A stretch of DNA of 64,000 bases. Origin: Haliotis rufescens (lineage: Eukaryota). Where the stretch lies: positions 57,350,001-57,414,000 of the forward strand of contig NW_025963890.1 in the NCBI RefSeq assembly GCF_023055435.1, written 5' to 3'. The notes beneath the pieces are model-generated. The model was not told the DNA's origin and did not search any database. It saw only the letters and a list, made by a program, of their open reading frames with translations. Positions 10,860 to 62,233 of the stretch are shown here, one piece after another (position 1 is the first letter of the stretch; the number at the start of each line of letters is the position of its first letter). The translations under genes were made by a program, and so were the position numbers.

Positions 10860-10947
10860 TATAAACTGCAGCTGAGCTAGTGATAGTATCATTGGCTTCA
10901 TTAGTTCCAGTAGCACTCTAGTTCGGTACAGGGACAATCCAAGCCAG
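10860..10947 (+). promoter_or_regulatory. TATA box, Inr and non-coding exon 1 of copy 1
   Basis: TATAAA 10860-10865, TCATT Inr with A at 10891 (+31), donor CAG|GTAAAT after 10947. Conserved in copies 2-5. Confidence 0.75.
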
Positions 10948-11146
10948 GTAAATTCTTTGGTTTTATCAGCCCTGATGATACATACGTATTTATACATTGG
11001 CTAGTTTTACTGAAATATCGGAATGCAAGACTGTTGTTACTGATATAGCTGTGTTACATTCATGAACATGAAATAACTGCGATTAATATTGTTTGAGAAT
11101 GCATGTTAAGAATTCTGAACTATACAAAGTATATTTTTCAGACAAA

Positions 11147-12066
11147 ATGAAGATCATATGCCTTTGCATAGCTCTCTTTGGCGCTGCAGCCAATGGTAAG
11201 TAAATACTCGCGTATACATATATACATTACAAATATTAACTACATATCTTTATCTGTGCGAATTAATCAACTGCATAATTATATATAAGTACAGTTTGTG
11301 TTGCGAGTACAGTTCATGAATATTCTCAAAGATAAGACACTGTGCACAATTCTATTGAAATATCATAACTCTAATTATTCTTTTCCAGCTCAAAGTACTA
11401 CACATGCTTATAACAACGTCAACCAGTTTAGTTTCCCTCCAATGAACAGCCATCACAGTCAAGGCAACACTGTATCCACGGCCTATGGTTACCATGGTAA
11501 CAGTATGTCCACCAACAACGGTAACCAAGGTAATTCAGTTTCCAAAGACAACGGTTATAAAGACAACAAGTGATAGTGGCAGTTGTAGTGGTAGTAATAG
11601 TAGTAGTAGCAGTAGCAGTTAAACGATATAAGGAAAGTAATATAAGTATAAGTAAACGATAACTCACATGAAACATCTTTTGCTACCAGCTCAAGCACCT
11701 GCACCAGCTTATCCCACGATGAATACCAACGCTTACCCAATGTCAAACAACTACGCCTCCCAAGCGAATGATTACAATGGTTACCAAAGCAACGTCGCGT
11801 CCACTCAAAATGGTTACCAGAGCAACACCAACAACATCAACTCTTACATGCTTCCAATGATGATGGGTATGGACCAAGGAAGGCACATGGCAACTCTCGG
11901 AATGATGATGAACTCGAGGCAGGGCAACAACATGCTCCCCTTCTACATGATGAACCAAGGGTATGAGAACATGCTGCCCATGATGGCCTTCATGAACCGC
12001 GGCACCCAGAGAGGCCAGAGGATGAACCCCTTCATGATGATGACTCTTCATGAAGCGATGAACTAA
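11147..12066 (+). CDS. Secreted Met/Asn/Gly/Gln-rich low-complexity protein, copy 1 (188 aa; 141 aa if exon 3 is skipped)
   Basis: join(11147..11195,11389..11529,11690..12066). GT-AG phase-1 introns; signal peptide MKIICLCIALFGAAANA|Q; AATAAA at 12219. Confidence 0.85.
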
Positions 12067-12454
12067 AGAATTGACTAAACTGTGATGAAATATTTGAGTG
12101 AACACAAGGGGTTGATTATTTATGTATGTTTATTAGATGGTATCCCGTGATGCACTCTCAAAACGTTGATATCACGAACTATTTATTGACTTATTTATGA
12201 AACAATAATAATTTATTGAATAAACTTTCTTGAATCATACATGCTATATGTTTCTTCTTTTAAACCTATATACCACACGTGACGAATTGATGATACCGTT
12301 ACGTTACATTCGTTCAAACACACTCATTCACTAAATCTAGATCATGAACAGCGGCAACGAGAGAGGCTTTGACGTGACAATACATTTACAGTGTCGCCGT
12401 ATTGATGATACTGTTCATTACGTTCATTCCACATGATTAATTCACAAAGTGGGG

Positions 12455-12770
12455 GCACAAAAAGCGACAAAACCCTTTCTATATCCAATAGAAATCTCTA
12501 CATAAAGCAGAGTCGAGTACCATTCCGACTAAATCATGAGAATGTGTTTATGAATCACTCTCAAATAGTAGTGATACCAAGTGAGCGTATCCTGCCCCAC
12601 CGGTGGCAACCGTCATAAACACATGCAAAGGTAGACAATTGTCCATATAAAAACACACGGGAACATATGGCACAAGTCAGAATAGGGAATTGCAGGGACA
12701 TCACTTTGGTCACTGATGCTTCAGATTTGAAAATGTCTTCGACATGTCTACCATAAAACGTTTTGAAAGC
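12455..12770 (-). mobile_element. Penelope-like element 3' fragment
   Basis: Minus strand encodes KAFKTFYGRHVEDIFKSEASV plus the conserved 3' region. Paralogous fragments at ~19280-19600, 26035-26345 and 35190-35480. Confidence 0.7.
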
Positions 12771-13059
12771 TTTACTTTTCAAGAACAGTGGCAACTGGAA
12801 GGGCTGCTTCAAAGTGAAGGCATTTACCATATAATTGAGACGAACCATATCAAAATAAGAAGTATGTACAGATGTGTGTACTCGTATGAGATCGATCTCT
12901 GTTTCTACGTTCTACATTATACAACGTAAACGAGTCGTTTATTTGAAATATAATTTAAGAGTAAGGAAGTACTTTTGATGGAGAAAAAACATTTCACAAT
13001 TTGAAAAGTATTCACTATTTAGATAGATAGATTGTTTCAGCATCTCACTCTGACGATGA

Positions 13060-13258
13060 GTTGATGAGGTGACATGGAATGAAGGTTATTATTTCTTATT
13101 ATATAGCTACGTGCATCCACGTTTGTGTGAGTGTGTGTGTCTGCCTGTACTAGCCATGACTTATGCTGATTTGATAGTGCTAGCCCACTGAGATGCCATG
13201 CTACAGTTAACATGAAGACCCCACTCAGACACAGTATACTGACTCCGAGGACGCGGCC
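13060..13258 (-). mobile_element. 3' fragment of SINE family D
   Basis: Matches 54000-54145 of the full copy. Also present at ~26610-26800 and 35755-35950. Confidence 0.7.
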
Positions 13259-14229
13259 TTTACCCTTAGGGGTATTGAAGAAGGTACCTTTGTTGTGTTC
13301 ATTTGAAAGGTATATGCCACTTAAATAGACTGTTTTAGCGTCTAAATCTGAGGGGTATTGCAAATCTTTACAAACATTCTAAAAGAGAATGATTGTTTTA
13401 ATGTAACTGGATGATTATTTCCCTTTCGTCATTGCAACGTAATGTTCCGGGGACCCGTTTTACAAAACAACCATAGTGCTACGACAGTATTAAGTCCCGA
13501 TACCAAGTTCTAATTTAGACTGGCACTATTAGCATCTCAGATCTTTCGATGTAATGAAACTACTGAACACACACCTTTATTGTACGTTCCGTAACCGACG
13601 CAAATATAAATTGTTAATGCAAGAAAATAAAGTACTAGCCTAGATTCTCCACAGAAATAGGTTGCATTTGGCGTAAAGGGCAAATTAGATGTGAAAGTTT
13701 TATGAATGGAGCACTGAAAATCAGTGATGACAGCAGGTATTTATGAATAGGATAGCATAACTGTCCTGCTCCACCGGTAGCACCCGCCACTCACACAATT
13801 TGCATAAAAAGTAAGTATCTATCGCCTGATGCCGCACAGCAGTACTCCTGACACGCGACGACAAACTGTAAACAGAGACCATATATGGTCTCTGCTGTAA
13901 ACAAACCAGACAATCAAGTGGTCGAGAAAATCCTGTGACACGATAGTGCATTTACTCATTTTGTTAAGACTAATAAAACCGATATGTTCATTTTTGAATT
14001 ACGTCTGCTGTGTACATGTGCAAAGATTCTGCTGCTTATAAGTAAAGAAAAACGTTGAAGAAATTAATGTATTCGTTTTGCAACACAGTGAGGGCTGTTT
14101 TGATGTCTCGGCCCAAACATTTGTTTTGTAGTTGACTCAGCATAGATAAACGCTACTGAGCTTGTGATGAAACTCGGGGACTTCAGTCCACCAGCTGACC
14201 CAGTTTAAGTAAACATAAAATGCAAGAGA

Positions 14230-14620
14230 ATTAATTACCCGCCTAGATTATCAACCGAAACAGATTCACCTGTAGACAAACAAAGATGTCCTTTGAGCAA
14301 GTTACGGCATAAAGGCTGAATGCAGCTTCAGGAAATCATCAGTTTGGAAGGTCCATAAGAAGGATTTCAAAACCTGCTTCTTCTCGCAAGTCAGCATAAG
14401 TCAGGATACATTTATCAGATTTGTCAGGATATATTAAATCAATAAAAGCGACAAAATCCTTTCCAGAGGCCATTGTGCGATTCCGTTCGCGAATTTTCCG
14501 TTACTTATGAGGAAATTAATAATGCCATGTATCTAATTAAACCCGGTAAAGCAAAGTGTTGATATGTGATAGAAATGATGAAAAATATCAAAAAAATATT
14601 ATCATGCAATGTACTCTGGT
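14230..14620 (+). mobile_element. Degenerate LINE ORF2 remnant (pre-RT region)
   Basis: Frameshifted EEINNAMYLIKPGKA...EMMKN resembles the LINE 'EEI..AI..LK.GKA.G.D.I..EMLK' motif. Repeated in each spacer, and as ...MWKVIRGISKP at ~42400-42760. Confidence 0.5.
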
Positions 14621-14679
14621 ATCAACACGACAAACTTAAGGAAAAACAAACGGGGTTGCTGTAAATAGAGTTACATCTG

Positions 14680-15450
14680 TGTTACGTTTGGGAATAGGAC
14701 ATTCAGGCAGGAAGTAGGCACTCCATGTCCGACGTTTATGCTCCCTTCCTTGCTGACCTGTTTCTTTATGCATAAGAGTCTCAATTTCTTTTCGGATTGG
14801 CAAAATCAAAACAAGGAAATTGGCCAACAAGTTTAACTTTAACTTCAGGGGTATACATCATCTGATATCGTTCTATAAATAGTCAGTGAAAAGTCAATAT
14901 TTAGATCTATGCATGAAGATCCAGAGTAACAAAACTATACACGAGACTTTATGACAAGAGGGATGCTTTCAACTTTCCCTTTTTGTCGAGCAATATTCCA
15001 GCAGCTCCAGCTTTTAGTGTCAACTTTGGTGTACTTTTGAGGTTCAATCGAGCATACTTTTCCACGAAGATTTCAAAGAGCGCCATACGACTCTTGCTGA
15101 GAGTTGTTTGATCTGGGTTACAGCAGTCAAGGCCTTAGAAAAGCTTTCAAAACGTTTTATGGTAGACATGTGGAAGACATTTCCAATCTGACGCATCAGT
15201 GAAAAAAAATGATGTCCGACCCAATTTTCTGTTTTGACTTTTACCATAATGTCCCCGTGTTTGACAGTTGACTTGCCTTTGCTTGTGTTTGTGACGCGTT
15301 TTCGCGAGCACATGGTATAATCACTATTTGATAGTGATTCATCGACACATTCTCATGATGTAGAACCTGAGATTCATTTGTATACAATGACTTTAAGACC
15401 ATATCGTTCAGTATTTATACGCGTATGCCCATTACGGAACAATGAAAATT
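14680..15450 (+). mobile_element. Degenerate Penelope-like reverse transcriptase remnant
   Basis: Fragments VTFGNRTFRQEVGTP, APFLADLFLYA, KFNFNFR, YLDL, LYDKRDAFNFPFLSSNIPAAPAF and KAFKTFYGRH appear in order, matching the PLE RT core/thumb. Many stops and frameshifts. Confidence 0.75.
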
Positions 15451-16297
15451 GAAAATGAATATCTCCGTTTATCCCTTCTATTATGACAAAAACAATACCT
15501 CTCATCTTTTATATTTTTCTAAAACACTTAAAATGAAACTCTTCCTCGCAAATGAAATAAAGTTTGCATATATACCATGTCTACAGGAAGCACATTATAA
15601 CGATAGGCGCAACGATAATACAAGTATTATATTGTACATAATTTGAAATTATGTATATGGTCCGGTGGCCTAGAATACAATATGCTTCTAGACTATTTCT
15701 CGATCAAGTTTACTAAATAATATGATACTCCTACGATACAGGCTACAGAATATATAACATATATGTGAATTCCCTCAATAAATTACAGACACGATGTTGT
15801 ATATTATATAAAACACCTCATAAACTGCACCACGTGACAAAGAGGCCCCCATGTCACCTACTGTCAATGTGCCCATCACTCCCTCTTGTTGTGTTGTAAT
15901 ACAACATTACAGGGATACCTAGACGCATTCGCGGCATGCTACCTGAGTCTTATGTTCTTTTGATTCATATTGAATACAATCATGTGGACATCCGTCGTTC
16001 CTCTGAAGCTGTTATGGTATATCTAACTTACCAGTGAGATTACACAGAACGCGTTGTTCGTAGTATGTTTAAAACAGCATTGATTTCGTTAGAACGATTT
16101 ACGAATATTTTTTAGAAGACAAACATTTTGATTTACAAATATAAATAAATCTGTAAACTATGAGCATTGAGTTATATTATATACACTTATTATTTATGTG
16201 TGGTAGATAGTTTCTGATAGTATTTAGGATCCATAAACACATGTGACTTATTTTGTTATATCAGTATCAGAACCTATCAAGTATCTAAAAGTATTTC

Positions 16298-17663: not shown

Positions 17664-17751
17664 TATAAACTGCAGCTGAGCTGGTGATAGAATCATTGGC
17701 TTCATTAGTTACAGTAGCACTCTAGTTCGGTACAGGGACAATCCAAGCCAG
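17664..17751 (+). promoter_or_regulatory. TATA/Inr/non-coding exon 1 of copy 2
   Basis: TATAAA 17664, TCATT A at 17695, donor after 17751. Confidence 0.75.
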
Positions 17752-17951: not shown

Positions 17952-18883
17952 ATGAAGATCATATGCCTTTGCATAGCTCTCTTTGGCGCTGCAGCCAATG
18001 GTAAGTAAATACTCGCGTATACATATATACATTACAAATATTAACTACATATCTTTATCTGTGCGAATTAATCAACTGCATAATTATATATAAGTACAGT
18101 TTGTGTTGCGAGTACAGTTCATGAATATTCTCAAAGATAAGACACTGTGCACAATTCTATTGCAATATCATAACTCTCATCATTCTTTTCCAGCTCAAAG
18201 TACTGCACATGCTTATAACAACGTCAACCAGTTTAGTTTCCCTCCAATGAACAGCCATCACAGTCAAGGCAACACTGTATCCACGGCCTATGGTTACCAT
18301 GGTAACAGTATGTCCACCAACAACGGTAACCAAGGTAATTTTGTTTCCAAAGACAACGGTTACAAAGACAACAAGTGACAGTGGTAGTTGTAGTGGTAGT
18401 AATAGTAGTAGTAATGATAGTAGTAGCAGTAGCAGTTAAACGATATAAGGAAAGTAATATTAGCATAAGTAAACGATAACTCACATGAAACATCATTTGC
18501 TTGCAGCTCAAGCACCTGCACCAGCTTATCCCACGATGAATACCAACGCTTACCCAATGTCAAACAACTACGCCTACCAAGCGAATGATTACAATGGTTA
18601 CCAAAGCAACGTCGCATCCACTCAAAATGGTTACCAGAGCAACACCAACAACGTCAACTCTTACATGCTTCCAATGATGATGGGTATGGACCAAGAAAGT
18701 CACATGGCAACTCTCGGAATGATGATGAACTCGAGGCAGGGCAACAACATGCTCCCCTTCTACATGATGAACCAAGGGTATGAGAACATGCTGCCCATGA
18801 TGGCCTTCATGAACCGCGGGAACCAGAGAGGCCAGAGGATGAACCCCTTCATGATGATGACTCTTCATGAAGCGATGAACTAA
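17952..18883 (+). CDS. Secreted Met-rich protein, copy 2 (188 aa)
   Basis: join(17952..18000,18194..18334,18507..18883). Open frame, canonical splice sites, AATAAA 19036. Confidence 0.85.
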
Positions 18884-23958: not shown

Positions 23959-25100
23959 ATGAAGATCATATGCCTCTGTATTGCTCTCTTGGGCGCTGCA
24001 GCCAATGGTAAGTAAATAAGCGTGGATACATCTATGCATTACAAATATTACCTATATATCTTTATCTGTGCGAATTAATCAATTGCACAATATGTACTCA
24101 CCGCCAAAAGAAACGCAAATTCCATACATGTTGGTTAATACATGAAGACTTACTCATATTTAAGAGATAGTAGATTGGTTCGATCCACAAAGGAACATAC
24201 TGTTATGTTATGTGAACCGATGCTTATGAACGCATAACATGTGACCTCATAGAAACATGTCTCGAGAAGCACCATTTGTCTCGTGCAGGATTAGCGTGTA
24301 AAGTTTGGAAATCACGTGCAGCATATCTTGAAAGCAGTGAAGACACTCTGTGGTAACACTTGACTGATTGTTAGTTTAACATTAATTGGTGTACATTCTT
24401 AACGAACATACTTCTCTATATGTTTCTTTCGTTCGTGTTTCTTTTAGCGTAGAGTATATACACTTATAGTTTGTTTTGCGAATACAGTTCATGAATATTC
24501 TCAAAGATAAGACACTGTGCACAGTTCTGTTGCAATAGAATAACTCTCATCATTCTTTTCCAGCTCAAAGTACTGCACATGCTTATAACAACGTCAACCA
24601 ATTTAGTTTCCCTCCAACGAACAGCCATCACAGTCAAGGCAACCCTGTTTCCATGGCATATGGTTACCATGGTAACAGTTTATCCACCAACAACGGTAAC
24701 CAAGGTAATTCAGTTTACAATAACACAGCAGTTGTCAAGGCAGCTAGTGATAGTTGTAGTAGTTGTAGTTGTTGTAGTGGTAGCGGGAATGGTTGTTGTT
24801 GTTGTTTGTTATTTAACGCCGCACTCAACAATATTCCAGCTATATGTCGGAGGTCTGTAAATAATCTATTCTGGATCAGACAAACCAGTGATTGACACCA
24901 TGAGCATCGATCTACGCAAATGGGATACGATGACATGCATCAATCGAGTCAGCGAGTCTGAACACCCGATCCCGTTAGTCGCCTATTTCGACAAGCAGTG
25001 TCGCCTCTTACGGCAAGGGTTGCTGAAGACCTATTCTAACCCGGATTTTCACGTGTCAGTGGTAGAAGATGTAGTAGTAGAAGTAGTAACAGTAGTAGTA

Positions 25101-25154
<54 letters not shown>

Positions 25155-25635
25155 TCAGTAGTAGTAGTAACAGCAGCAGCAGCAGTAACAGTAGCAGATA
25201 AACGATATAAGTAAAGTAATATCCGTATACGTAAACGATAAACATTTTTTGCTACCAGCTCAAGCACCTGCACCAGCCTACCCCACGACGAACACCAACG
25301 CTTACCCAATGTCAAACAACTACGCCTACCAAGCGAATGGTTACAATGGTTACCAAAGCAACGCCGCGCCCGCTACAACTGGTTACCAGAGCAACACCAA
25401 CAACATCAACTCTTACATGCTTCCAATGATGATGGGTATGGATCAAGGAAGTCACATGGCAACTCTCGGAATGATGATGAACTCCAAACAAGGCAACAGC
25501 ATGCTCCCCTTCTACATGATGAACCAAGGGTATGAGAACATGCTGCCCATGATGGCCTTCATGAACCGCGGCAACCAGAGAGGCCAGAGGATGAACCCCT
25601 TCATGATGATGACTCTTCATGAAGCGATGAACTAA
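23959..25635 (+). CDS. Secreted Met-rich protein, copy 3 (188 aa)
   Basis: join(23959..24007,24564..24704,25259..25635). Open frame; introns enlarged by a MITE and a SINE. Confidence 0.85.
24097..24454. mobile_element. Tc1/mariner-type MITE in intron 2 of copy 3
   Basis: TIR ctcaccgccaaaagaaac / gtttcttttagcgtagag, TA TSD. Absent in copies 1, 2 and 5. Confidence 0.8.
24792..25055 (-). mobile_element. SINE-like element family B in intron 3 of copy 3
   Basis: (AAC)n tail; full body homologous to 57081-57327. Confidence 0.85.
25060..25197. repeat. (GTA)n microsatellite
   Basis: Direct observation. Confidence 0.95.
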
Positions 25636-32960: not shown

Positions 32961-34247
32961 ATGAAGATCATATGCCTCTGTATTGCTCTCTTAGGCGCTG
33001 CAGCCAATGGTAAGTAAATACGCGTGGATACATTTATGCATTACAAATATTACCTATATATCTTTATCTGTGCGAATTAATCAATTGCATAGTATGTACT
33101 CACCACCCAAAGAAACGCGAATGCCATACATGTTGGTTAATACATGAAGACTTACTCATATTTAAGAGATAGTAGATTGGTTCGATCCACAAAGGAACAT
33201 ACTGTTATGTTATGTGAACCGATGCTCATGAACACATAACATGTGACGTCATAGAAACATGTCTCGAGATGCACCATTTGTCTCGTGCAGGATTAGTGTG
33301 TAAAGTTTGGAAATCACGTGCAGCATATCTTGAAAGCAATGAAGACACTCTGTGGTAGCACTTGACTGATTGTAAGTTTAACATTAATTGGTGTACATTC
33401 TTAACGAACATACTTCTCTATATGTTTCTTTGGTTCGTGTTTCTTTTAGCGGTGAGTATATACACGTATAATTTGTGTTGCGAATACAATTCATGAATAT
33501 TCTCAAAGATAAGACACTGTGCACAGTTTTGTTGCAATATCATAACTCTCATCATTCTTTACCAGCTCAAAGTACTGCACATGCTTATAACAACGTCAAC
33601 CAGTTTAGTTTCCTTCCAACGAACAGCCATCACAGTCAAAGCAACACTGTTTCCACGGCATTTGGTTACCATGGTAACAGTTTATCCACCAACAACGGTA
33701 ACCAAGGTAATTCAGTTTACAATAACAAAGCAGTTGTCAAGGCAGCTAGTGATAGTTGTAGTAGTTGTAGTTGTGGTAGTGGTAGAGGGAGTGGTTGTTG
33801 TTGTTTGTTATTTAACGCCGCACTCAACAATATTCCAGCTATATGTCGGCGGTCTGTAAATAATCGATTCTGGACCAGACAAAACAGTGATTGACACCAT
33901 GAGCATAGATCTACGAAAATGGGATACGATGACATGCATCAATCGAGTCAGCGAGTCTGAACACCCGATCCCGTTAGTCGCCTCTTTCGACAAGCATAGT
34001 CGCCTCTTACGGCAAGGGTTGCTGAAGACCTATTCTAACCCGAATTTTCACGTGTCAGTGGCAGTAGATGAAGTAGTAGTAGTGAGTGAGTGAGTATGGT
34101 TTTACGCCGCTTTTAGCAATATTCCAGCAATATCACGGCGGGGGACACCAGAAATGGGCTTCACACATTGTACCCATGTCGGGAATCGAACCCGGGTCTT
34201 CGGCGTGACGAGCCAACGCTTTAACCACTAGGCTACCCGACCGCCCC

Positions 34248-34286: not shown

Positions 34287-34769
34287 TGTTGTAGTAGTAG
34301 AAGTAGTAGCAGCAGCAGTAACAGTAGCAGATAAACGATATAAGGAAAGTAATATTAGTATAAGTAAACGATAAACATTTTTTTGCTACCAGCTCAAGCA
34401 CCTGCACCCGCCTACCCAACGACGAATACCAACGCTTACCCAATGTCAAACAACTACGCCTACCAAGCAAATGGTTACAATGGTTACCAAAGGAACGCCG
34501 CGTCCGCTACAACTGGTTACCAGAGCAACACAAACAACATCAACTCTTTCATGCTTCCAATGATGATGGGTATGGACCAAGGAAGTCACATGGCAACTCT
34601 CGGAATGATGATGAACTCGAGACAGGGCAACAGCATGCTCCCCTTTTACATGATGAACCAAGGGTATGAGAACATGCTGCCCATGATGGCCTTCATGAAC
34701 CGCGGGAACCAGAGAGGCCAGAGGATGAACCCCTTCATGATGATGACTCTTCATGAAGCGATGAACTGA
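32961..34769 (+). CDS. Secreted Met-rich protein, copy 4 (188 aa)
   Basis: join(32961..33009,33566..33706,34393..34769). Open frame, TGA stop, AATAAA 34938. Confidence 0.85.
33099..33456. mobile_element. Tc1/mariner-type MITE in intron 2 of copy 4
   Basis: Same insertion as 24097-24454; TA TSD. Confidence 0.8.
33794..34052 (-). mobile_element. SINE-like family B in intron 3 of copy 4
   Basis: Same insertion as 24792-25055. Confidence 0.85.
34082..34247 (-). mobile_element. Young SINE family A inserted in the (GTA)n tract of copy 4
   Basis: Full length, near consensus; absent from copy 3. Confidence 0.92.
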
Positions 34770-37294
34770 GGAACATTGACTAAACTGTTGTGAAATATTT
34801 GAGTGAATACAAGGAGTTGATTATTTATTAATGTATGTTTGTTAGATGGTATCCCATGATGGTATCCCATGCACTCTCAAAACGTTGATGTATCAAAATA
34901 TTTATTGACTTATTTATGAAACAATAATAATTTATTGAATAAACTTATTTGAATCATACATGCTATATGTTTGTTGTTTTTAACCTACATACCACTCGTG
35001 ATGAATTGATGATACCGTTACGTTACATTCGTTCACACACACTCATTCACTAAATCTAGATCATAAACAGCGGCAACAAGAGAGGCTTCCGCATTGACGT
35101 GACAATACATTTACAGTGTCGCCGTATTGATGACACTGTTCATACGTTCATTCCTTATGATTAATTCACAAAATGGAAGCACAAAAAGCGACAAAACCCT
35201 TTCCATATCCAACAGAAATCTCTACATAAAGCAGAGTCGAGTAACATTCCTACTAAATCATGAGCATGTGTTTATGAATCACTCTCAAATTATAATGATA
35301 CCAGGTGAGCGTATCCGTCACAAACACATGCAAAGTTAAGTCAATTGTTCATCTAAAAACACACGGTCACATATGGCACAAGTCAGAATAGGGAATTGCA
35401 GGGACATCATTTCGGTCACTGATGCTTCAGATTTGAAAATGTCTTCAATATGTCTACCATAAAACGTTTTGAAAGCTTTACTTTTCAAGAACAGTGGCAA
35501 CTGGAAGGGCTGCTTCAAAGTGAAGGCATTTACCATATAATTGAGACGAACCATATCAAAATAAGAAGTATTTACAGATGTGTTTACTCGTAAGAGATCG
35601 ATCTCTGTTTGTACATTCTGCATTATACAATGTAAAGGAGTCATTTATTTGAAGTATAATTTAAGAGTAAGGAAGTACTTTTGATAAAGTCAATAGAAGA
35701 GTATTCACTTCTTCGACAGATAGATTGTTTCAGCATCTTACCCTGACGATGAGTTGATGAGGTGACATGGGATGAAGGTTATTATTTCTTATTATATAGC
35801 TACGTGCATCCACGTTTGTGCGATTATGTGTGTCTGCTTGTACTAGCCCGGACTAATGCTGTTTGATAGTGTTAACACACTGAGATACCATGCCACAGTT
35901 TACATGAAGACCACACTCAGACACAGTATACTGACTCCGAGGACGCGGCCTTTACCCTTAGGGGTATTGAAGAAGGTACCTTTGTTGTGTTTATTTGAAA
36001 GGTATATGCCACTTAAATAGACTGCTTCAGCATCTTAACCAGAGGGGTATGTTTACAAACATTATAAAAGGAAATGATTGTTTTAAAGTAACTGGATGAT
36101 TATTTACCTTTCGTCATTGCAAAGCAACCATAGCGCTACGACATTAGTAAGTCCCGATACCAAGTTCTAATTTAGACTGGAACTATTAGCATCTCAGATC
36201 TTTCGATGTAATGAAACTACTGAACACACGCCTTTATTGTTCGTTCCGTAACAGACGCAAATATAAATTGTTAATGCAAGAGAATAAAGTACTAGCCTAG
36301 ATTCTCCACAGAAATAGATTCTAATTGGCGTAAAGGGCAAATTAGATGTGAAAGTTATATGAATGGAGCACTGAAAATCAGTGATGACAGCAGGTATTGG
36401 TGAATAGGTTAGCATGACTGTCCTGCTCTACTGGTAGCACCCGCCACTCACACAATTTGCATAAAAAGTAAGTATCTATCGCCTGTTGCCGCACAGTAGT
36501 ACTCCTGACACGCGACGGCAAACTGTAAACAAAGCAGACAATCAAGTGGTCGAGAAAATAGTGCATTTACTCATTTTGTGGAGACTAATAAAACCGACAT
36601 GTTCATTTTTGAATTACGTCTGCTGTGTACAAGTGCAAATATTCTGCTGCTTATGAGTAAAGAAAAACGTTGAAGAAATTAATGGATTCGTTTTCGCAAC
36701 ACAGTGGGGGCTGTTTTGATGTCTCGGCCCAAACATTTGATTTGTAGCTGACTCAGGATTGATAAATGCTACTAGCTTGTGATGAAACTCGGGGACTTCA
36801 GTCCACCAGCAGACCCAGTTTAAGTAAACATAAAATGCAAGAGAATTAATTACCCGCCTAGATTATCCCACGAAACAGATTCACCTGTAGACAAACAAAG
36901 GTGTCCTTTGAGGAAGTTACTGCATATAGGCTGAATGCAGCTGCAGGAAATCATCAGTTTGGAGTCAAAAGAAGGATTTCAAAACCTGCTTCTTCTGGCA
37001 AGTCAGCATAAGTCAGGATACATTGTATAAGAATTGTCAAGATATATTAAAGAAACAAAAGCGACAAAACCCTTTCCAGAGTCCATTGTGCGATTCCGTT
37101 CGCGATTTTTCCGTTACTTATTAATTCAATTAATAATGCCGTGTATCTAATTAAACCCGGTAAAGCAAAGTGTTGATATGTGATAGAAATGTTGAAAAAT
37201 ATCCAAAAAATATTATCATGCAATGTACTCAGGTATCAACACGACAAACTTAAGGAAAAACAAACGGGGTTGCTGTAAATAGAGTTACATCTGT

Positions 37295-38040
37295 GTTACG
37301 TTTGGGAATAGGACATTCAGGCAGGAAGTAGGCACTCCATGTCCGTCGTTTATGCTCCCATCCTTGCTGACCTGTTTCTTTATGCATACGAGTCTCAATT
37401 TCTTTTCGGATTGGCAAAATCAAAACAAGGAAATTGGCCAACAAGTTTAATTATAACTTCAGGGGTATCCATCATCTGATGTCGTTCTATAAATAGTCAG
37501 TGAAAAGTCAATATTTAGATCTATGCATAAAGATCCAGAGTAACAAAATCTATACACGAGACTGTGTGACAAGAGGGATGCTTTCAACTTTCCCTTTTTG
37601 TCGAGCAATATTCCAGCAGCTCCAGCTTTTAGTGTCTACTTTGGTGTACTTTTGAGGTTCAATCGAGCATACCTTTTCCACGAAGATTTCAAAGAGCGCC
37701 ATACGACTCTTGCTGAGAGTTGTTTGATCTGGGTTACAACAGTCAAGGCCTTAGAAAAGCTTTCAAAACGTTTTATGGTAGACATGTGGAAGATATTTTC
37801 CAATTTGACGCATCAGTGAAAAAAATGATGTCCGACCCAATTTTCTGTTTTGACTTTTGCCACCGGTGGGTCAGAATACGCTCACGTTTTCGCGAGCACA
37901 TGGTATCATCACTATTTGATAGTGATTCATCGACACATTCTCATGATGAAGAACCTGAGATTCATTTGTATACAATGACTTTCAGACCATATCGTTCAGT
38001 ATTTATACGTGTATGCCCATTACGGAACAATGAAAATTGA
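37295..38040 (+). mobile_element. Penelope-like RT remnant (unit copy)
   Basis: SSNIPAAPAFSVYF... and FDLGYNSQGLRKAFKTFYGRHVEDIFQFDASVKKMMSD. Confidence 0.75.
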
Positions 38041-40507: not shown

Positions 40508-41439
40508 ATGAAGATCATATGCCTTTGCATAGCTCTCTTTGGCGCTGCAGCCAATGGTAAGTAAATACTCGCGTATACATATATACATTACAAATATTAA
40601 CTACATATCTTTATCTGTGCGAATTAATCAACTGCATAATTATATATAAGTACAGTTTGTGTTGCGAGTACAGTTCATGAATATTCTCAAAGATGAGACA
40701 CTGTGCACAATTCTATTGCAATATCATAACTCTCATCATTCTTTTCCAGCTCAAAGTACTGCACATGCTTATAACAACGTCAACCAGTTTAGTTTCCCTC
40801 CAATGAACAGCCATCACAGTCAAGGCAACACTGTATCCACGGCATATGGTTACCATGGTAACAGTATGTCCACCAACAACGGTAACCAAGGTAATTCTGT
40901 TTCCAAAGACTACGGTTACAAAGACAACAAGTGACAGTGGTAGTTGTAGTGGTAGTAATAGTAGTAGTAATGGTAGTAGTAGCAGTAGCAGTTAAACGAT
41001 ATAAGGAACGTAATATTAGCATAAGTAAACGATAACTCACATGAAACATCATTTGCTTGCAGCTCAAGCACCTGCACCAGCTTACCCCACGACGAATACC
41101 AACGCTTACCAAATGTCAAACAACTACGCCTACCAAGTGAATGATTACAATGGTTACCAAAGCAACGCCGCGCCCGCTACAACTGGTTACCAGAGCAACA
41201 CAAACAACATCAACTCTTACATGCTTCCTATGATGATGGGTATGGATCAAGGAAGTCACATGGCAACTCTCGGAATGATGATGAACTCCAAACAAGGCAA
41301 CAACATGCTCCCCTTCTACATGATGAACCAAGGGTATGAGAACATGCTACCCATGATCGCCTTCATGAACCGCGGGAACCAGAGAGGCCAGAGGATGAAC
41401 CCCTTCATGATGATGACTCTTCATGAAGCGATGAACTAA
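40508..41439 (+). CDS. Secreted Met-rich protein, copy 5 (188 aa)
   Basis: join(40508..40556,40750..40890,41063..41439). Open frame, AATAAA 41591. Confidence 0.85.
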
Positions 41440-42010: not shown

Positions 42011-42011
42011 C

Positions 42012-44432: not shown

Positions 44433-45317
44433 GTATTGAATTGTAGAGACTAAGTAGTAAAGTATTGAATTGTCTAGACGAGGTGGTAAGATATTGAATT
44501 GAATAGACTAAGTGGTAAGGTATTGAATTGTATAGACTAAGTAGTAAAGTATTGAATTGTCTAGACGAAGTTGTAAGGTATTGAATGGTATAGACTAAGT
44601 GGTATGGTATTGAATTGTATAGACTAAGTTGTATGGTATTAAATCGTACAGACAAAATGGTATGGTATTGAATTGTATAGACTAAGTGGTAAAGTATTGA
44701 ATTGTATCGACTAAGTGGTATGGTATTGAATTGTATAGACTAAGTTGTATGGTATTGAATTGTATAGACTAAGTGGTAAAGTATTGAATTGTACAGACAA
44801 ATTGGTAAGGTATTGCATTATATAGACTAAGTGGTAAAGTATTGAATTGTATAGACTAAGTAGTAAAGTATTGAATTGTCTAGACGAAGTGGTAAAGTAT
44901 TGCATTATATAGACTAAGTGGTAAGGTATTGAATTGTATAGACTAAGTAGTAAAGTATTGAATTGTCTAGACGAAGTGGTAAAGTATTGCATTATATAGA
45001 CTAAGTGGTAAGGTATTGAATTGTATAGACTAAGTAGTAAAGTATTGAATTGTATAGACTAAGTGGTAAAGTATTGAATTGTACAGACAAAGTGCTAAGG
45101 TATTGCATTATATAGACTAAGTGATAAAGTATTGAATTGTATAGACTAAGTAGTAAGGTCTTGAATTATATAGACTAAGTGGTAAGGTATTGCATTATAT
45201 AGACTAAGCGGTAAAGTATTGAATTGTATAGACTAAGTTGTAAGGTATTGAATTATATAGACTATGTGGTAAGGTATTGCATTATATAGACAAAGTGGTA
45301 AGGTATTGAATTATATA
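44433..45317. repeat. 29-bp minisatellite, ~30 copies (agactaagtggtaaggtattgaattgtat)
   Basis: Direct observation. Confidence 0.95.
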
Positions 45318-46197: not shown

Positions 46198-46459
46198 GTA
46201 ACTTTGTGGGTCCAGGTTGCTTTACGTGTGTGCATCTTATCTTAATGCGTTTGTTTTGTTAGCATGTTGACACTTATAGAATTTAATATTTACTTTAGTT
46301 TACATAGTGTGTTAATTCTTCACTGTATTTACATTCTAAATAGTTGAAGCTTTACCATACATTCTTATATTCATAGTATTTACTGAACCTCTACCAATAC
46401 GATGTGCAATAGGATACGGGAATTTGTATATATTCTATTTTGGTGTTTACATGTCGGAA

Positions 46460-46880
46460 CATTCTCTTTCTGCCAAGATTTTAAAGAGCGTCATACGACT
46501 CTTGCTCTGAAGTTGTTTGATCAAGGTTCCAACATTCAAGGCCTCTGTAGAGCTTTCAAAAAGTTTTATGGTAGACATTTAGAGGACATTACCAAATTTG
46601 ACGCATCAGTGAGAAAAATCATTTCCGTTGCAATTCCCTATTCGGACTTGTACCATATGTTCCCATGTTGTTTTTTCAGGTGAACAATTGACTTGCCTTT
46701 GCAAGTGTTTGTGACGGGTGCCACCGGTGGGTCAGGATACGCTCACCTTTTCGCGAACACCTGGTATCATCACTATTTGATTCATAAACACATGCTCATG
46801 ATATAGTCTGAATTGTACAATCGACTCTGCTTTATGCAGAGATTTCTTTTGGATATGAAAAGGGTTTTGTCGCTTTATTT
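46460..46880 (+). mobile_element. Penelope-like 3' fragment upstream of copy 6 exon 2
   Basis: QDFKERHTTLALKLFDQGSNIQGLCRAFKKFYGRHLEDITKFDASV. Confidence 0.75.
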
Positions 46881-46941: not shown

Positions 46942-48300
46942 ATGAAGGTTTTCTTTCTGTGTGTGGTGGCTGTCGTGTTCGGTGTCGTCGCTCGAGGTGA
47001 GTTGATCTTCCTATGGTGATTGAGTTGAACATAAAGCCTGATCAGTTCTATGTATTTGATAGTGATTCATATACAGATGCTTATTATATAGTTGGAATCG
47101 TACACTGGACTGTGAGTTTTGCAGAGATTTCTTATGATCATGGAAAGGGCTGTGTCTCTTTTATTATACAGTAAACTACGGTTATAACGAACTCAAAGGG
47201 ACCACTAATTTTAGTTTGTTATAATCGTAGTTCGTTATAAGCATATATAACATATATACCGCAAATGGCCGGGGGAAAAAAACCAGTTCGTTATCTCCGT
47301 CTGTTCGTTAGAAGCGTGTTCGTTATAAACGTAGTTTACTGTAATTACAAATATTTTTATAAAAAGAAATTGTCGATTTTATTCAGACATAATTATCGCT
47401 TGGCTGAAATCCAACAGCTACAGGCAACTTTTTGCTAATAGGCGTTACTGATTAAATACTTTATTAAAGTGTTTTCAAAATTATTTAGCAAAATATTCAA
47501 TTAGTAAGAGATGGTGATTTGTGAGGTATGGTTTCTGTTTAACAGCGCAGTCCCCTGCAACTAATGCCACAACTGTCGATGCTCAGACAAGTGCTACAGT
47601 CCCACAAGGAAACCCTTCAACAAATATCCACGTCCCACAAGGAAACCCTTCAACAAATACCCACGTCCCACAAGGAAACCCTTCAACAAACATCCACGTC
47701 CCACAAGGAAACCCTTCAACAAACATCCCAAACTATCATATGATGAACACCCAAGGATACCCCACGACAAACCCACACGCCCCATATGGATTCCCCGTGA
47801 TGAACACCCAAGGATACCCCACGACAAACCGACGCGCCCCATATGGATTCCCCGTGATGAACACTCAAGGGTACTCCATGGCAAACACCCAAGGATATCA
47901 AATGGCGAATACCCAAGGATACCCAATGACGAACAACCAAGGCTATCAAATGACGGAAAACCCGGTCTATCCAATGACCATCGGCAATAGCATGCCTACT
48001 AATAATGGTTACCACGGCAACATCTTGCCCGCCAACAACCATTACCAAACCTTAGGGAACACCAACAACGTCAACTCTTACATGCTTCCAATGATGATGG
48101 GTATGGATCAAGGAAGTCACATGGCAACTCTCGGAATGATGATGAACTCGAGGCAGGGCAACAGCATTCTCCCCTTCTACATGATGAACCAAGGGTATGA
48201 GAACATGCTTCCCATGATGGCCTTCATGAACCGCGGGAACCAGAGAGGCCAGAGGATGAACCCCTTCATGATGATGACCCTTCATGAAGCGATGAACTAA
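46942..48300 (+). CDS. Secreted Met-rich protein, copy 6 (269 aa) with expanded Pro/Gln/Asn/Thr repeats
   Basis: join(46942..46996,47546..48300). Signal peptide MKVFFLCVVAVVFGVVARA|Q, donor CGAG|GTGAGT, acceptor ttaacag|CG, AATAAA 48439. Confidence 0.88.
47169..47341. mobile_element. Tigger/pogo-like MITE in the intron of copy 6
   Basis: TIR cagtaaactacggttataacgaac / gttcgttataaacgtagtttactg, TA TSD. Confidence 0.85.
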
Positions 48301-52200: not shown

Positions 52201-52892
52201 ATAATATCCCCATCACTAGATGGCTGTAATATGATATCCCCATCACTATATGGCTGTAATATGATATCCCCATCACTATATGGCTGTAATATGATATACC
52301 CATCACTATATGGCTGCAATATGATATCCCCATCACTATATGGCTGCAATATGATATCCCCATCACTATATGGCTGCAATATGATATCCCCATCACTATA
52401 TGGCTGTAATATGATATCTCCATCACTATATGGCTGCAATATGATATCCCCATCACTATATGGCTGCAATATGATATCCCCATCACTATATGGCTGCAAT
52501 ATGATATCCCCATCACTATATGGCTGTAATATGATATCTCCATCACTATATGGCTGCAATATGATATCCCCATCACTATATGGCTGCAATATGATATCCC
52601 CATCACTATATGGCTGCAATATGATATCCCCATCACTATATGGCTGCAATATGATATCCCCATCACTATATGGCTGCAATATGATATCCCCATCACTATA
52701 TGGCTGCAATATGATATCCCCATCACTATATGGCTGCAATATGATATCCCCATCACTATATGGCTGTAATATGATATCTCCATCACTATATGGCTGCAAT
52801 ATGATATCCCCATCACTATATGGCTGCAATATGATATCCCCATCACTATATGGCTGCAATATGATATCCCCATCACTATATGGCTGCAATAT
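52201..52892. repeat. 30-bp minisatellite, ~23 copies (atgatatccccatcactatatggctgcaat)
   Basis: Direct observation; very homogeneous. Confidence 0.97.
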
Positions 52893-55185: not shown

Positions 55186-56156
55186 CACTCAACCCCGGGT
55201 ATAACGATCACCTCAATATCAGATGGTAATCCACATAACTCAACCCTGGGTATAACGAACACCTCAATGTCAGATCGTAATCCACATAACTCAACTCCGG
55301 GTATAACGAACACCTCAATATCAGATCGTAATCCACATAACTCAACTCCGGGTATAACGAACACCTCAATATCCGATCGTAATCCACATAACTAAACCCT
55401 GGGTATAACGAACACCTCAATATCCGATCGTAATCCACATAACTCAACCCTGGGTATAACGAACACCTCAATATCAGATCGTAATCCACATAACTCAACC
55501 CTGGGTATAACGAACGCCTCAATATCAGATCGTAATCCACATAACTCAACCCTGGGTATAACGAACACCTCAATATCAGATCGTAATCCACATAACTCAA
55601 CCCTGGGTATTACGAACGCCTCAATATCAGATCGTAATCCACATAACTCAACCCTGGGTATAACGAACACCTCAATATCAGATCGTAATCCACATAACAC
55701 AACCCCGGGTGTAACGAACACCTCAATATCAGATCGTAATCCACATAACTCAACCCCGGGTATAACGAACACCTCAATATCCGATAGTAATCCACATAAC
55801 TCAACTCCGGGTATAACGAACACCTCAATATCCGATAGTAATCCACATAACTCAACTCCGGGTATAACGAACACCTCAATATCAGATCGTAATCCACATA
55901 ACTCAACTCCGGGTATAACGAACACCTCAATATCCGATCGTAATCCACATAACTCAACCCTGGGTATAACGAACACCTCAATATCAGATCGTAATCCACA
56001 TAACTCAACCCCGGGTATAACGAACACCTCAATATCCGATCGTAATCCACATAACTCAACCCTGGGTATAACGAACACCTCAATATCAGATCGTAATCCA
56101 CATAACTCAACCCCGGGTGTAACGAACACCTCAATATCAGATCGTAATCCACATAA
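55186..56156. repeat. 51-bp minisatellite, ~19 copies
   Basis: Unit aactcaaccctgggtataacgaacacctcaatatcagatcgtaatccacat. Confidence 0.97.
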
Positions 56157-56996: not shown

Positions 56997-57080
56997 CAAA
57001 ATCATTATATGAAAATTAAATAAACGTTCGTAGAAACTGCTCCAGCACTTTATTGCTCTTCGTAAGTAGTGACGACCTAA

Positions 57081-57327: not shown

Positions 57328-57445
57328 TGGCGCACTAACAGATGGATGATCAGCTTCAGTGACTTGGTTGATTGTATGTCATTGTACTTAACGACGCAAT
57401 GGAATCTTGCTCATAGTATCATTCACTGGTTTGTAAAGCCTACGT

Positions 57446-57722
57446 GGGGCACGGGTGGCCCAGTCGTCTAAGGCGGCGCGACTCGCTGTGCACAGTTGAG
57501 TCCCTTTGGCACGCCAGGAACCTATAATTGTGGGTTCGAATCCCAGTTCGACCCTATTATGTTTCTAGGTTTGTCAGCACCATACCCGTGCTCGTGGGTT
57601 TCACCGAAGTGGTAAACGTCTGAGACCTGCATCACCTCGGGCTTTCCTCCCACATTAAGCTGAGACGCCGTGATATAACGGGAATACTGTTTAAAAGCGG
57701 GGTTAAACCTAACTCACTCACT
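57446..57722 (+). mobile_element. SINE family C, full length (tRNA-Leu-like head)
   Basis: ggtggcccagtcgtctaaggcg A box, ggttcgaatccc B box, imperfect TSD tgtaaagcctacg / tgtaaaacctatg. Confidence 0.88.
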
Positions 57723-59035
57723 GTAAAACCTATGATGGTTAGTTATCACAGATACATATAGATTGATTCTTCTGGAGACACTTATTCATTTGCAGCATGT
57801 ACATCCATTTAAACAATCGTGTAAAAATAAACGATAAACGAAATAAAATGTTTATATTTAAGAGCCAGTTTTGAAGATTTCTTCTCATATTCCATAAACA
57901 AAACAAGACATCAACATCAAATCACTTAATCGCTCAATATTAAATCATACCCCGACTGTTATAACCAGCAAAGGTCTAACGTTGATGTGTCCTGTGCCAA
58001 CAGCGAAAGGTAATACCATGTTACAAAGAAATTATGAAAACAGAAATAAGAAGAACTCTTTGACCCGATAATGTTTGGAAGCCATTGTAACGCTGTTTAA
58101 CCCAGTCGCCAAGCGTAACAGATGAATGTGTAACCACCGGCCATGTTACGTCACACTGGCCTATGGTCTGGTTTGTATGAAGTAATGAGGCTGGTCATGA
58201 GACCAAGTCCGGCTCATCTCTGTGATGTATGATCGTAGCCTCCCCAGTCACACACATATATATAAATTCAAGAATTTACCTGGTTCATATGATAGAACCG
58301 CTCGGAATACAACAGTGTTGACGTTTAGTATTGGTAAGTCTACCTTTTGATAACATTATTTTTACGATTATATATATATATTTATACAACAGTGTTGACG
58401 TTTAGTATTGGTAAGTCTACCTTTTGATAAAATTATTTTTACGATTTTATATATATATATCTAGTACATGAATGTTTCAAGTTTATTTGTTCTGGGTGAC
58501 AATGTTTTTTGTAGAGAATGACATCAATAATTAATAAATCTTACTTTTCATAATAATAGTACTCAAACAGTTGTAAAATTCAGGGTTCACTTTTGATAAA
58601 TATGATCATTCAAAATGACAAATTGATGTAAATATTTTAAAATCTGGATAATTGTATATTAATTTTATTCTTATCAATTTCTAACCATTTGGATAATTTT
58701 AATTATTCTGCAACCAGTTCTTCATCATTCTTTATCTTCAAGACTAACATAAAAGTGAAACGTATTTAGTCCCTTCTTCATTACTGCTATAAGCTCAGTT
58801 TTCCGGTAACAAAACTAGGCTGCATTTCCAAACAAACACATACTTTTGTGTGTGCGTGTGTGAGTGACGGTAGGGCAGATCATGGTTTACCTTTTCTCGA
58901 ACATCTGGTTACATCACTGATTTCCATTGATCCTTTCATAGAATTTTCACCACCATTTCGCACTTTCCACCCACTGGAAGCGAGGCTGGTAATACTCCAG
59001 CGTTGACGCTATATATTTACAGGATTATGTGAACA

Positions 59036-59250
59036 GAGTGAGTGGGTTGGGTTAACCGTCGCTTTTAACAGCATTCCAGTTATATCACGGCGTGTCAGCT
59101 TGATGTGGGAGGAAAGCCCGAAGTGATGCAAATCTAAAACCCACGAGCACGGATATGGTGCTGACAAACCAAGAACCATAGTCAGGGCGACCAAGGATTC
59201 GAACCCACAATCATAGGTTTCTGGTGTGCCAAAGGGACGCAACTCTGCAA
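59036..59250 (-). mobile_element. SINE family C, degenerate
   Basis: Homology to family C. Confidence 0.8.
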
Positions 59251-59385
59251 ACCCGTGCCATCTATGTGAACATAGATTAATTATATCAATTCATGAAATA
59301 TACATATACAATAACGTGTATTTGATCTGTATTGTGTGTGAGTTCAATATACTGTTACAATTGACATGCTTGTAATGATGTGGGA

Positions 59386-59598
59386 GTGAGTTGGGTTTAA
59401 CAGTATTCCAGTCATATCACGGCGTGTCAGCTTAATGTGGGAGGAAAGCCCCAAGAGATACAGGTCTTAGGCGTTTACCACTTCGGTGAAACCCACGAAC
59501 ACGGGTATGGTGCTGACAAACCTAGAAACATAATCGGGGCGAACCGGGATTCGAACCCACAATTGCGGCGCCTTAGACGACTGGGCCACCCGTGCCCC
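59386..59598 (-). mobile_element. SINE family C, short-head variant
   Basis: TSD taatgatgtggga / taatgctgtggga. Confidence 0.88.
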
Positions 59599-59858
59599 TA
59601 ATGCTGTGGGATCTAGGATTAGGGATCTGAGAGGACGCGAGGCGGATACTGACAACAGGAAGCTGAGAGTACATAGGTGTCATTTACGGTACAAAACGAG
59701 GGGCAAAGTGTAGAGTAGAAACATGAGTGTAACAACAATGTCTGATACTGGAAAATTCAGAATTCAAGTCTACATTTAGTTTCATTGTCAGAACTACTCA
59801 ATATTGTTATCTACTTTTTCCTAATTAGAGAACATTTATTTCAGAATAAGCAACAACA

Positions 59859-62074
59859 ATGAAGTACTTGATGATCTGTTTCGCAATGTCTGCATCCACA
59901 CTAGTGCACGGTAAGTGAGTGAGTGAGTTTGATTTTTCGCCGCTGTTAGCAACATTCCAGCAATATCACGGCGGTGGACACCAGAAATGGGCTTCACATT
60001 GTAGCCATGTCGGGAATCGAACCCGGGTCTTCAGCGTGACGAGCGAACGCTTTAACCACTAGGCTACCCGACCGCCCCACAGGGTTAGTGAATTTGTGCA
60101 CAGTAAATGGCACAATTCGATAACCACAGTGTCAATCTCAGGATCACTTATTGCTTTCTTTCATGTATGTCATACTCAACTGTTTGTAATAATCAGTTAG
60201 GCATTTCTGTAGCACCTAAATACCGAGAGCTGTCCAGAAAGAGCTTGCTCGTATGTTTTTTAAGAGGAATGTGTACAGTTCAGCTTCCAAAATTTGTGAT
60301 GTCGATTCTGTTACGGAGATGAGCTGAAGCTTGATCAATACCTCAGAAGCAGCTTTTGAAGAAGCGCTTTACAGATAAATAGATAATCTTTATATACTCG
60401 GTTATTCGAATATATATTATACGGGTATATGAATAAACAACAAATCTAGCACACAGAGTAAGCTTTGGCTATATTTACATTTGATGTAAACCCGATACAT
60501 TGTCAGAGTGAACGTATGTACATCTCAAGTCAATGGTGTTTGTTTTGGTCTATCTCTAGAACACACGCGCATGGACGTCGCTAAATAAGTGCAATAATCT
60601 TGGACGCGACGTTAAACCCAATTTCGCCTCATTTATCTCTAGACCTGTGTGACATTACTTGTCATGATAACTTCCAGCCCAAAGTTATAATAACACAAAA
60701 TGACACAACCCTTTCCATATCATCATGTGTTATGATTCACTACCAACAAGTGATGATACCAGGTCTTCGCGAAAAGGTGAGCGTATCCTGACCCACCGGT
60801 GGCACCCGTCACAAACACATGCAAAGGCAAGTCAATTGTTCACCTGAAAAAAACACGGGAACATATGGTACAAGTCAAAATAGGGAATTGGATGGGACAT
60901 CATTTTGGTCACTGATGCGTCAAATTTGGAAATGTCTATCATAAATTGTCTATCATAAAATGTTTCGAAAGCTCTCCTGGGGCCCTGAAAACCACATTCA
61001 CTCTAGCGCGAGTAAACTACAATACAGTAGAGTGTGCTTAACAAGTCAGATGCCAATACACCACATCTGCATAATTTAGAGTATATACTGTCTTGCAAAG
61101 AGAACTGAAAACGAGGAGCAAGAAGACGATGGTCAGTGATGCACTCTCGGATACAAGGGTGGTCTTCACTGACAGTGAAAGTAGAATACATAGACATGGT
61201 GACGACCAGAAAGACTCATCCTCCTAAACGATATAATAACGAAGTTTCATTGTATGTAGTTTTCGCACATTTTTTTCCAAATGCTTTCCAGATGAGTGTA
61301 TTATTTTAATGCAGAATTTTTTTATTTTTCTTATTATTTTTTTAAAAAATTTTTATTTATTTTTTTTAATTTATTTTTTAAATTAATGCAGAAATAGTGT
61401 AATGTGCTCAGCCCCATATTAAGATAACATGTATCTGATCAACAGTTGTCTGATCTACAGAGTGCTTTAGATTTCGATAGAGTAGATTCATTTCTATAAT
61501 TCAATGAACTTTCTTTGATTCAGGTCAATATTCCACCGGTAACGATCTATATTCAGGAGGACGCACCTCTTATGGAAATGGCTTCAACAAACAATACTAT
61601 GTCCAAAACCAAACACCTGGCACCAAGGATGTGGTACCTCACTTGATTCATCGAAGCCAACCTGTAGCCATCCCGGTCCCGAAAACCCAGTTTAACACCA
61701 TGTTCAACACACATGGTTACCTAGGCAACACCAACAGAAATACAAACGGTTACTACAGACACATCAACGGAAATGGTTATAATGACAACGTCCGCGTGAA
61801 CGAACTGAGCATCCAGATGTCCAGAAACAAAGGTTACCATAGCAACTCGGCTATGCTCCCATTACTGTTTGGGGTCGAACATGGATCCGAACAGATGGCA
61901 GCCCTGGGACTGATGATGAACTCAAGACAGGGCAACAACATGCTCCCCTTCTACATGATGAACCAAGGGTATGAGAACATGCTTCCCATGATGGCCTTCA
62001 TGAACCGCGGGAACCAGAGAGGCCAGAGGATGAACCCCTTCATGATGATGACTCTTCATGAAGCGATGAACTAA
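59859..62074 (+). CDS. Secreted Met-rich protein, copy 7 (200 aa), most divergent N-terminus
   Basis: join(59859..59910,61524..62074). Signal peptide MKYLMICFAMSASTLVHG|Q, donor CACG|GTAAGT, acceptor ttgattcag|GT CAA TAT TCC..., in frame with the ORF at 61631. Confidence 0.82.
59914..60078 (-). mobile_element. SINE family A inserted at the exon-2 donor of copy 7
   Basis: The tail (gtgagtgagt) begins within the GTAAGT donor. Confidence 0.9.
60700..60975 (-). mobile_element. Penelope-like 3' fragment in the intron of copy 7
   Basis: Homologous to 12455-12770. Confidence 0.7.
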
Positions 62075-62140
62075 AGAATTGACTAAACTGTGGCGTAATA
62101 TTTAAGTGAATGCGAGAGGTTGATTATTTATGTATGTTTG

Positions 62141-62233
62141 CTGCCCATGATGGCCTTCATTAACCGGGGCACCCAGAGAGGCCAGAGGGTGAACCCCTTG
62201 ATGATGATGACTCTGCATGAAGCGATGAACTAG
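62141..62233 (+). pseudogene. Orphan duplicate of the last 30 codons of the family (LPMMAFINRGTQRGQRVNPLMMMTLHEAMN*)
   Basis: Lies 67 nt after the copy 7 stop, is more diverged, and is followed by a unique 3' UTR. Confidence 0.9.

Follow-up and report, generated by a model that had tools for sequence, protein, structure and literature searches.

A Haliotis gene array encoding predicted secreted proteins with a constant methionine-rich tail and divergent front ends

The stretch of DNA analyzed here (hereafter, the window) comprises 64,000 nucleotides (nt) of contig C112 of the abalone Haliotis rufescens (57.35-57.41 Mb) and contains seven intact genes arranged head to tail on the + strand, the products of which combine a variable front end with a nearly constant, methionine (Met)-rich C-terminal tail of ~75 amino acids (aa). 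Seven last-exon open reading frames (ORFs), ending at positions 12066, 18883, 25635, 34769, 41439, 48300, and 62074, carry the Met-rich end with 0-3 substitutions, and a search for the 24-nt tail core returned seven + strand occurrences, compared with 0 expected in shuffles. The last exon of copy 1 matches with 100% identity a 188-aa H. rufescens RefSeq protein annotated as "uncharacterized protein LOC124143678", in agreement with the molluscan origin suggested by an earlier reading of this DNA (hereafter, the original prediction). Signal exons were located by scanning for short exons that begin with ATG, end in phase 1, and encode hydrophobic peptides, and the gene models, built with GT..AG introns, are open in 7 of 7 cases. 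The models are as follows, with positions counted from the start of the window:

10860-12240, + strand: copy 1 (LOC124143678, 188 aa), with a TATA box at 10860-10865, a 5' non-coding exon ending at 10947, and AATAAA at 12219
11142-11195 (ATG at 11147), 11389-11529 (cassette), and 11690-12066 (last, including the stop codon), + strand: exons of copy 1; product identical to RefSeq protein P0001
17664-19041, + strand: copy 2 (LOC124143684 isoform X2), coding exons 17952-18000, 18194-18334, and 18507-18883; product identical to P0024
23541-25789, + strand: copy 3 (LOC124143694), coding exons 23959-24007, 24564-24704, and 25259-25635; product identical to P0018
32543-34943, + strand: copy 4 (LOC124143702), coding exons 32961-33009, 33566-33706, and 34393-34769; product identical to P0028
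40221-41596, + strand: copy 5 (LOC125382106), coding exons 40508-40556, 40750-40890, and 41063-41439; product identical to P0022
46942-48444, + strand: copy 6 (269 aa), coding exons 46942-46996 and 47546-48300; tail and 3' untranslated region (UTR) of the type found in copies 1-5
59859-62074, + strand: copy 7 (200 aa), a model with a predicted signal exon at 59859-59910, a 1613-nt intron, and a last exon at 61524-62074

In copies 1-5, the signal exon measures 49 nt and the product 188 aa; the respective values are 55 nt and 269 aa for copy 6, and 52 nt and 200 aa for copy 7. A GT donor closes each signal exon in phase 1. The exon plan of the original prediction, a signal exon separated from the rest of the coding sequence by a phase-1 intron, applies to copies 6 and 7, which have two coding exons, but needs to be amended for copies 1-5, which contain three (49 + 141 + 377 nt): a symmetric cassette exon of 141 nt is placed between the signal and last exons by means of a second phase-1 intron. 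Copies 1-5 also have a 5' non-coding exon, and in copy 2 the homolog of the TATA box and exon 1 is located at 17664-17751, with 96.6% identity for the exon-1 homolog. The exon following the phase-1 intron opens with Ala-Gln or Gly-Gln in the window genes, and the Ala-Gln opening recurs in the paralogs located upstream and on contig C2. On inspection of the models, the N termini resemble signal peptides, with an M-K start, a hydrophobic core of 11-13 residues, and small residues at positions -3 and -1 (A-x-A or V-x-G), suggesting that the window genes encode secreted proteins. Whereas the spliced products of copies 1-5 each have an identical RefSeq entry, protein searches recovered no identical database entries for copies 6 and 7. 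RefSeq also holds an isoform X1 of LOC124143684 (P0019, 196 aa; window positions 18103-18334) that starts inside intron 1 and has no signal peptide; this is probably a retained-intron annotation artifact.

Two further observations concern the introns and the cassette exon of copies 1-5. Intron 2 (11530-11689 in copy 1) contains a GTA/GTT-type microsatellite, and its length, otherwise 160-172 nt, has increased to 554-686 nt in copies 3 and 4; in copy 3, introns 1 and 2 are both enlarged, to 556 and 554 nt. Reading through the donor of exon 2 continues the Gly-Asn-Ser-type repeat for another 14 codons, so that the cassette exon looks as if it had been cut out of a longer coding repeat.

The splicing of copy 1 can be followed in assembled contigs from sequencing runs X1, X2, and X4, which come from three studies and bear three organism labels, that of X1 being H. 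rufescens. Spliced contigs contain the joints 10947/11142 (X1 only), 11195/11389 (X1 and X2), and 11529/11690 (X1, X2, and X4), all over GT..AG introns; the predicted succession of signal exon, phase-1 intron, and mature chain starting with Gln is thus spliced in copy 1 as proposed. A further run, X9, spans the introns of copy 1 and is evidently DNA. The unaligned ends of contigs match paralogs exactly, namely, copy 6 (at 48028) and a short upstream paralog in X1, and an X2 contig, from another species, carries the last-exon sequence of copy 7 at 61865, again exactly. At least three of the seven window genes are transcribed. Contig word depth over the last exon is in the thousands in X1 and X2, although such depth is not a reliable guide to expression level. 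In one H. rufescens study, run X1 contains the sequence and two other runs lack it.

The mature chains begin with Gln and contain no Cys, no Trp (as had been noted in the original prediction), and 0-1 Lys, with four Lys in copy 7. Over the whole mature chain, Asn accounts for 14-18%, Met for 10-15%, and Gly for 7-10% of the residues. The front ends contain 22-30% Asn plus Gln and 7-10% Tyr and are also rich in Ser, Thr, and Gly; in copy 6, the front end includes 3.9 copies of a 33-bp unit (47599-47728; 96% matches), which encodes the 11-aa repeat that had been described earlier, as well as 57-bp tandem units (47741-47886). The front ends of copies 1-5, 6, and 7 align with one another at chance level only (40-65%, MAFFT), whereas the tails of copies 1-6 share 95-98% DNA identity, which bears out the proposed combination of variable front ends with a constant tail. 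Searches for known domains gave no assignment: Pfam reported nothing above threshold for the last exons, and the ESM Atlas search gave no usable match. The front end of copy 6 scored 21.4 bits against the mucin-like family PF16058, below the gathering cut-off of 28.7, and the other copies had no match; a mucin assignment was rejected on this basis.

The tail, with a Met content of 27-28% (21% in copy 7), consists of four or five short Met-rich hydrophobic blocks alternating with Gly/Asn/Gln/Arg spacers. Most blocks start with a Pro motif (M-L/N-P followed by an aromatic residue or Met), and the more general hydrophobic-x-Pro-hydrophobic motif starts four of the tail blocks, a count reached in 0 of 5000 shuffles. 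Across three subfamilies of the paralogs (see below), 23 columns of the tail are invariant, and the block layout is common to four subfamilies. A segment with 28% Met, several His residues nearby, no Cys, and putative disorder with helical propensity might also be expected of soluble Met-rich scavengers, the thioethers of which would take up oxidants or coordinate soft metals such as Cu(I) in hemolymph, mucus, or gut fluid, by analogy with the Met motifs of copper transporters and the Met-rich metal binders of the bacterial periplasm. The M-x-x-M spacing, however, is expected from the composition of 28% Met alone, the Pfam and HMMER profile searches revealed no homology to metal-binding families, and the Tyr/Asn-rich arms find no explanation, so that we regard a scavenging function as quite unlikely. 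The small size and predicted secretion of the products and the rapid diversification of the tandem family would suit precursors of secreted signaling or antimicrobial peptides; yet the models of copies 1-7 contain neither dibasic processing sites nor a Cys framework, and conservation extends over a long hydrophobic-polar repeat rather than a short peptide, which makes this interpretation highly improbable. The narrower candidate of a neuropeptide precursor was rejected for the same lack of dibasic sites in copies 1-7.

Beyond the window, the family is substantially larger. The tail profile A1 matched 7 of 7 window genes with E values of 5e-35 to 5e-33 and, when applied to the 1.33-Gb assembly, detected 16 intact + strand tails within 57.279-57.412 Mb of contig C112, along with one fragment on the same contig, and a further three tails on contig C2 at ~9.15-9.19 Mb. 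The Haliotis Met-rich-tail family comprises at least 19 genes in two clusters; the seven genes of the original prediction are those present in the window, but the family continues upstream and onto contig C2. Four subfamilies can be distinguished: that of the window, one with seven copies upstream, one consisting of an Asn-rich single gene, and a Gly/Met/Pro-rich one on C2. Their front ends are unrelated, and the tail plan is common to all four. The C2 paralogs L033, L034, and L035 (9.149-9.194 Mb) have front ends made of G-M-x-N-P-M-G-G-M repeats and a longer version of the Met-rich tail; their H. asinina homolog is P0005.

A HMMER search with the tail profile against 1.84 billion representative proteins returned five clusters, three of them "uncharacterized" proteins of H. 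rufescens, H. cracherodii, or H. asinina and the other two short fragments without a name; the profile check thus led to Haliotis proteins and the two fragments only, and to no characterized family. Word-indexed protein searches likewise yielded Haliotis entries only, among the matches listed. The RefSeq models from H. rufescens that are identical to the spliced copies 1-5, together with the relatives in H. cracherodii and H. asinina, place the family in three Haliotis species; these models are computed only, with no name, domain, or publication attached. As far as the sequences searched indicate, the family is restricted to abalone and has no name or Pfam family, its known members being designated only as "uncharacterized". 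The earlier statement that the family could not be recognized by name accordingly stands, the members being annotated as uncharacterized, Pfam yielding nothing, and the motifs being absent from the literature searched.

The tails and the arms evolve under different regimes. Among copies 1-5, the ratio of nonsynonymous to synonymous change (pN/pS) is 0.14 in the tail versus 0.48 in the mature front end, and synonymous divergence is similar in the two regions; the tail is therefore under purifying selection, and the arms are constrained much less. A set of pseudogenes or an annotation artifact was rejected as an explanation of the array, given the splicing, the intact frames, and the pN/pS of 0.14. 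The same values bear on the notion of sulfur- and nitrogen-rich storage proteins, deposited, for example, in the egg, larva, or digestive gland. The Asn and Met contents of the mature chain, the tandem amplification, and the occurrence in one of the runs of a single H. rufescens study, which points to tissue- or stage-specific expression, would all suit a storage role, and Met-rich seed storage proteins, which pass through the secretory pathway, are encoded by tandem arrays as well. Storage, however, leaves unexplained why 23 invariant columns and a pN/pS of 0.14 should be found in an ordered pattern of blocks, and we consider it improbable.

Constraint is accompanied by exchange of sequence between copies. 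In the comparison of copy 6 with copies 1-5 at the DNA level, the tail is 96-97% and the 3' UTR 84-88% identical, and no alignment is possible for the promoter, signal exon, intron, or front end, a pattern that points to gene conversion or recombination as the source of the copy 6 tail. Copy 7 is divergent from copies 1-6 up to ~61910 and then near-identical through 62139, and its former end lies beyond the stop codon now in use:

61910-62140, + strand: array-type patch in copy 7, covering the last ~55 codons, the stop codon, and ~65 nt of 3' UTR, as delimited by alignment
62141-62233, + strand: former end of copy 7, left stranded downstream of the stop in use and consisting of 30 final tail codons plus a stop codon (profile E value 7.8e-10)

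In an X2 contig from another species, a tail is directly joined to the UTR that follows the stranded piece at 62141-62233. The sequences of copy 6 and of the copy 7 patch together show that the tails are also propagated by gene conversion. Past the patch in copy 7 (62075-63270), no AATAAA is found for ~1.2 kb downstream of the stop codon.

Comparison between species shows change in repeat number as well. The H. cracherodii ortholog of copy 6 (P0030) has the same signal peptide and fewer repeat units, at 220 aa versus 269 aa. In a phylogenetic tree, the 188-aa paralogs cluster by species, with weak support (57/92; 88% of bootstrap trees).

The DNA around the genes is rich in repeats. A 26-bp satellite (1357-6451; 196 copies, 91% matches) gives rise to long spurious ORFs in several frames, and before it lie a direct repeat of 210 bp (1.9 copies) and ~149 TAC units in a row (193-963). 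Three intergenic minisatellites, at 44433-45317, 52204-52892, and 55187-56156, have repeat units of 29, 30, and 51 bp, each present in 19-30 copies. An ORF fragment with the common string KAFKTFYGRH.EDIF recurs between the genes, at 12561-12848 and 35336-35644 on the - strand and at 37720-38040 and 46402-46683 on the + strand, and probably belongs to a dispersed repeat. Pfam reported nothing for the intergenic ORFs, and the flanking DNA, examined in 10-kb pieces, contained no informative ORFs.

Several known systems invite comparison. Met- and Gln-rich secreted proteins have been identified in the shell of H. asinina (PMC2989941), and the window proteins could be calcified shell-matrix proteins of the nacreous or prismatic layer, distantly related to the H. 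asinina protein ML6A10 and acting on CaCO3 deposition. ML6A10-type nacre proteins are small, secreted, and Met-rich (7-11%), features shared with the window family, for which secretion is predicted. ML6A10 itself has a Met-rich C terminus ending in MM and weak colinear similarity to the window-family tail: the H. rufescens ortholog of ML6A10 is colinear with the tail of subfamily A at 27% identity (BLASTP E value 0.055) and scores 6.0 bits against the hidden Markov model (HMM) of the tail, a score reached by 26 of 2000 shuffles. This similarity is suggestive at most: it is non-significant, and hhalign finds nothing (probability 0.2). Unlike the window family, ML6A10-type proteins have a Met content far below 28%, lie at a different locus, and are proven shell components. 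Moreover, in the accessible parts of the shell proteome supplements, that is, the in-depth files for H. laevigata and the 14 H. asinina shell proteins, no family motif was found as an exact string, which speaks against the shell-matrix role offered in the original prediction; we regard such a role as unlikely. The ortholog of ML6A10 itself (L038) was located on contig C2 at position 34819233 (~34.82 Mb) by a degenerate pattern with one mismatch.

Abductin and MRNP34 are Gly/Met-rich ligament and nacre proteins of bivalves, secreted, repetitive, and Cys-poor components of extracellular materials, abductin being defined by Gly-dominated decapeptide repeats with Met and Phe. By description, the abalone family resembles them in being Met-rich, repetitive, Cys-poor, and, as predicted, secreted, and the G-M-x-N-P-M-G-G-M repeats of the C2 paralogs are of similar flavor. 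The window genes differ from abductin, again by description, in a Gly content of only 7-10% and in having no Gly-dominated decapeptide repeats, and the profile search against 1.84 billion proteins found no homolog outside Haliotis; abalone are not known to have a hinge ligament. A different kind of resemblance is to prion-like phase-separating domains, with which the family shares an Asn/Gln/Tyr/Ser/Gly-rich front end, a Met tail of sticker-and-spacer type, and the lack of a confident fold. The best-studied examples of such domains are mostly intracellular, in contrast to the window family, which is predicted to be secreted.

Molluscs build secreted materials from fast-evolving, lineage-specific, low-complexity proteins, and the present family conforms to this pattern. 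The signal-like leaders, the tandem amplification, the Tyr/Asn/Gln-rich arms, and the sticker-and-spacer tail jointly fit a secreted, self-associating material protein, and we suggest, with a probability of roughly 0.5, that the paralogs are secreted, intrinsically disordered, self-associating proteins of an extracellular material. Removal of the signal peptide would expose an N-terminal Gln, which would probably be cyclized to pyroglutamate. The front end evolves rapidly through gain and loss of repeats, the cassette exon, and relaxed constraint, and the tail may serve as a sticker-and-spacer self-association module that would bring the chains together in a condensed phase outside the cell, with subsequent interaction or cross-linking of the Tyr-rich arms. 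Such chains would form a secreted material produced in bulk, for example, the periostracum or another organic layer of the shell, mucus, or an adhesive. The structure and splicing of the genes, the size and taxonomic range of the family, selection and conversion acting on the tail, and the absence of a confident fold are observed here; secretion, self-association, and the material role are inferred.

Further results bear on this assignment to a self-associating material. In its favor, the mean predicted local distance difference test (pLDDT) score from AlphaFold is 45 when the whole protein is modeled and 50 when the tail is modeled by itself, and the only helices are three short ones; the window proteins, for which the models give no confident fold, may thus be intrinsically disordered, although low confidence combined with a shallow alignment is not proof of disorder. 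The absence of the family motifs from the consulted parts of the shell proteome supplements counts against the assignment. Those proteomes come from other species and were obtained after removal of the periostracum, and because it was removed in both studies, a periostracal or mucus product would have escaped them, which is itself an argument from absence. Neither the tail motifs nor the LOC identifiers were found in the literature searched.

A bolder and, in our view, doubtful extension of the material-protein hypothesis is that the tail is a new extracellular self-assembly domain, the solubility of which would be switched by oxidation of Met to the sulfoxide or by Cu(I) binding, such that the abalone could trigger condensation or hardening of a secreted material outside the cell, with interchangeable Tyr/Asn-rich arms tuning its properties.

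The array is a clean case of concerted evolution limited to one segment of an exon, with the conversion patch in copy 7 caught in the act. The family as a whole provides an unusually clear example of an undescribed domain with 28% Met that is held constant by selection and gene conversion, with attached front ends that undergo swapping, expansion, and contraction. Should the tail prove to be an assembly module, it would represent a compact new building block for protein materials and may offer a natural, Met-based control of condensation outside the cell.

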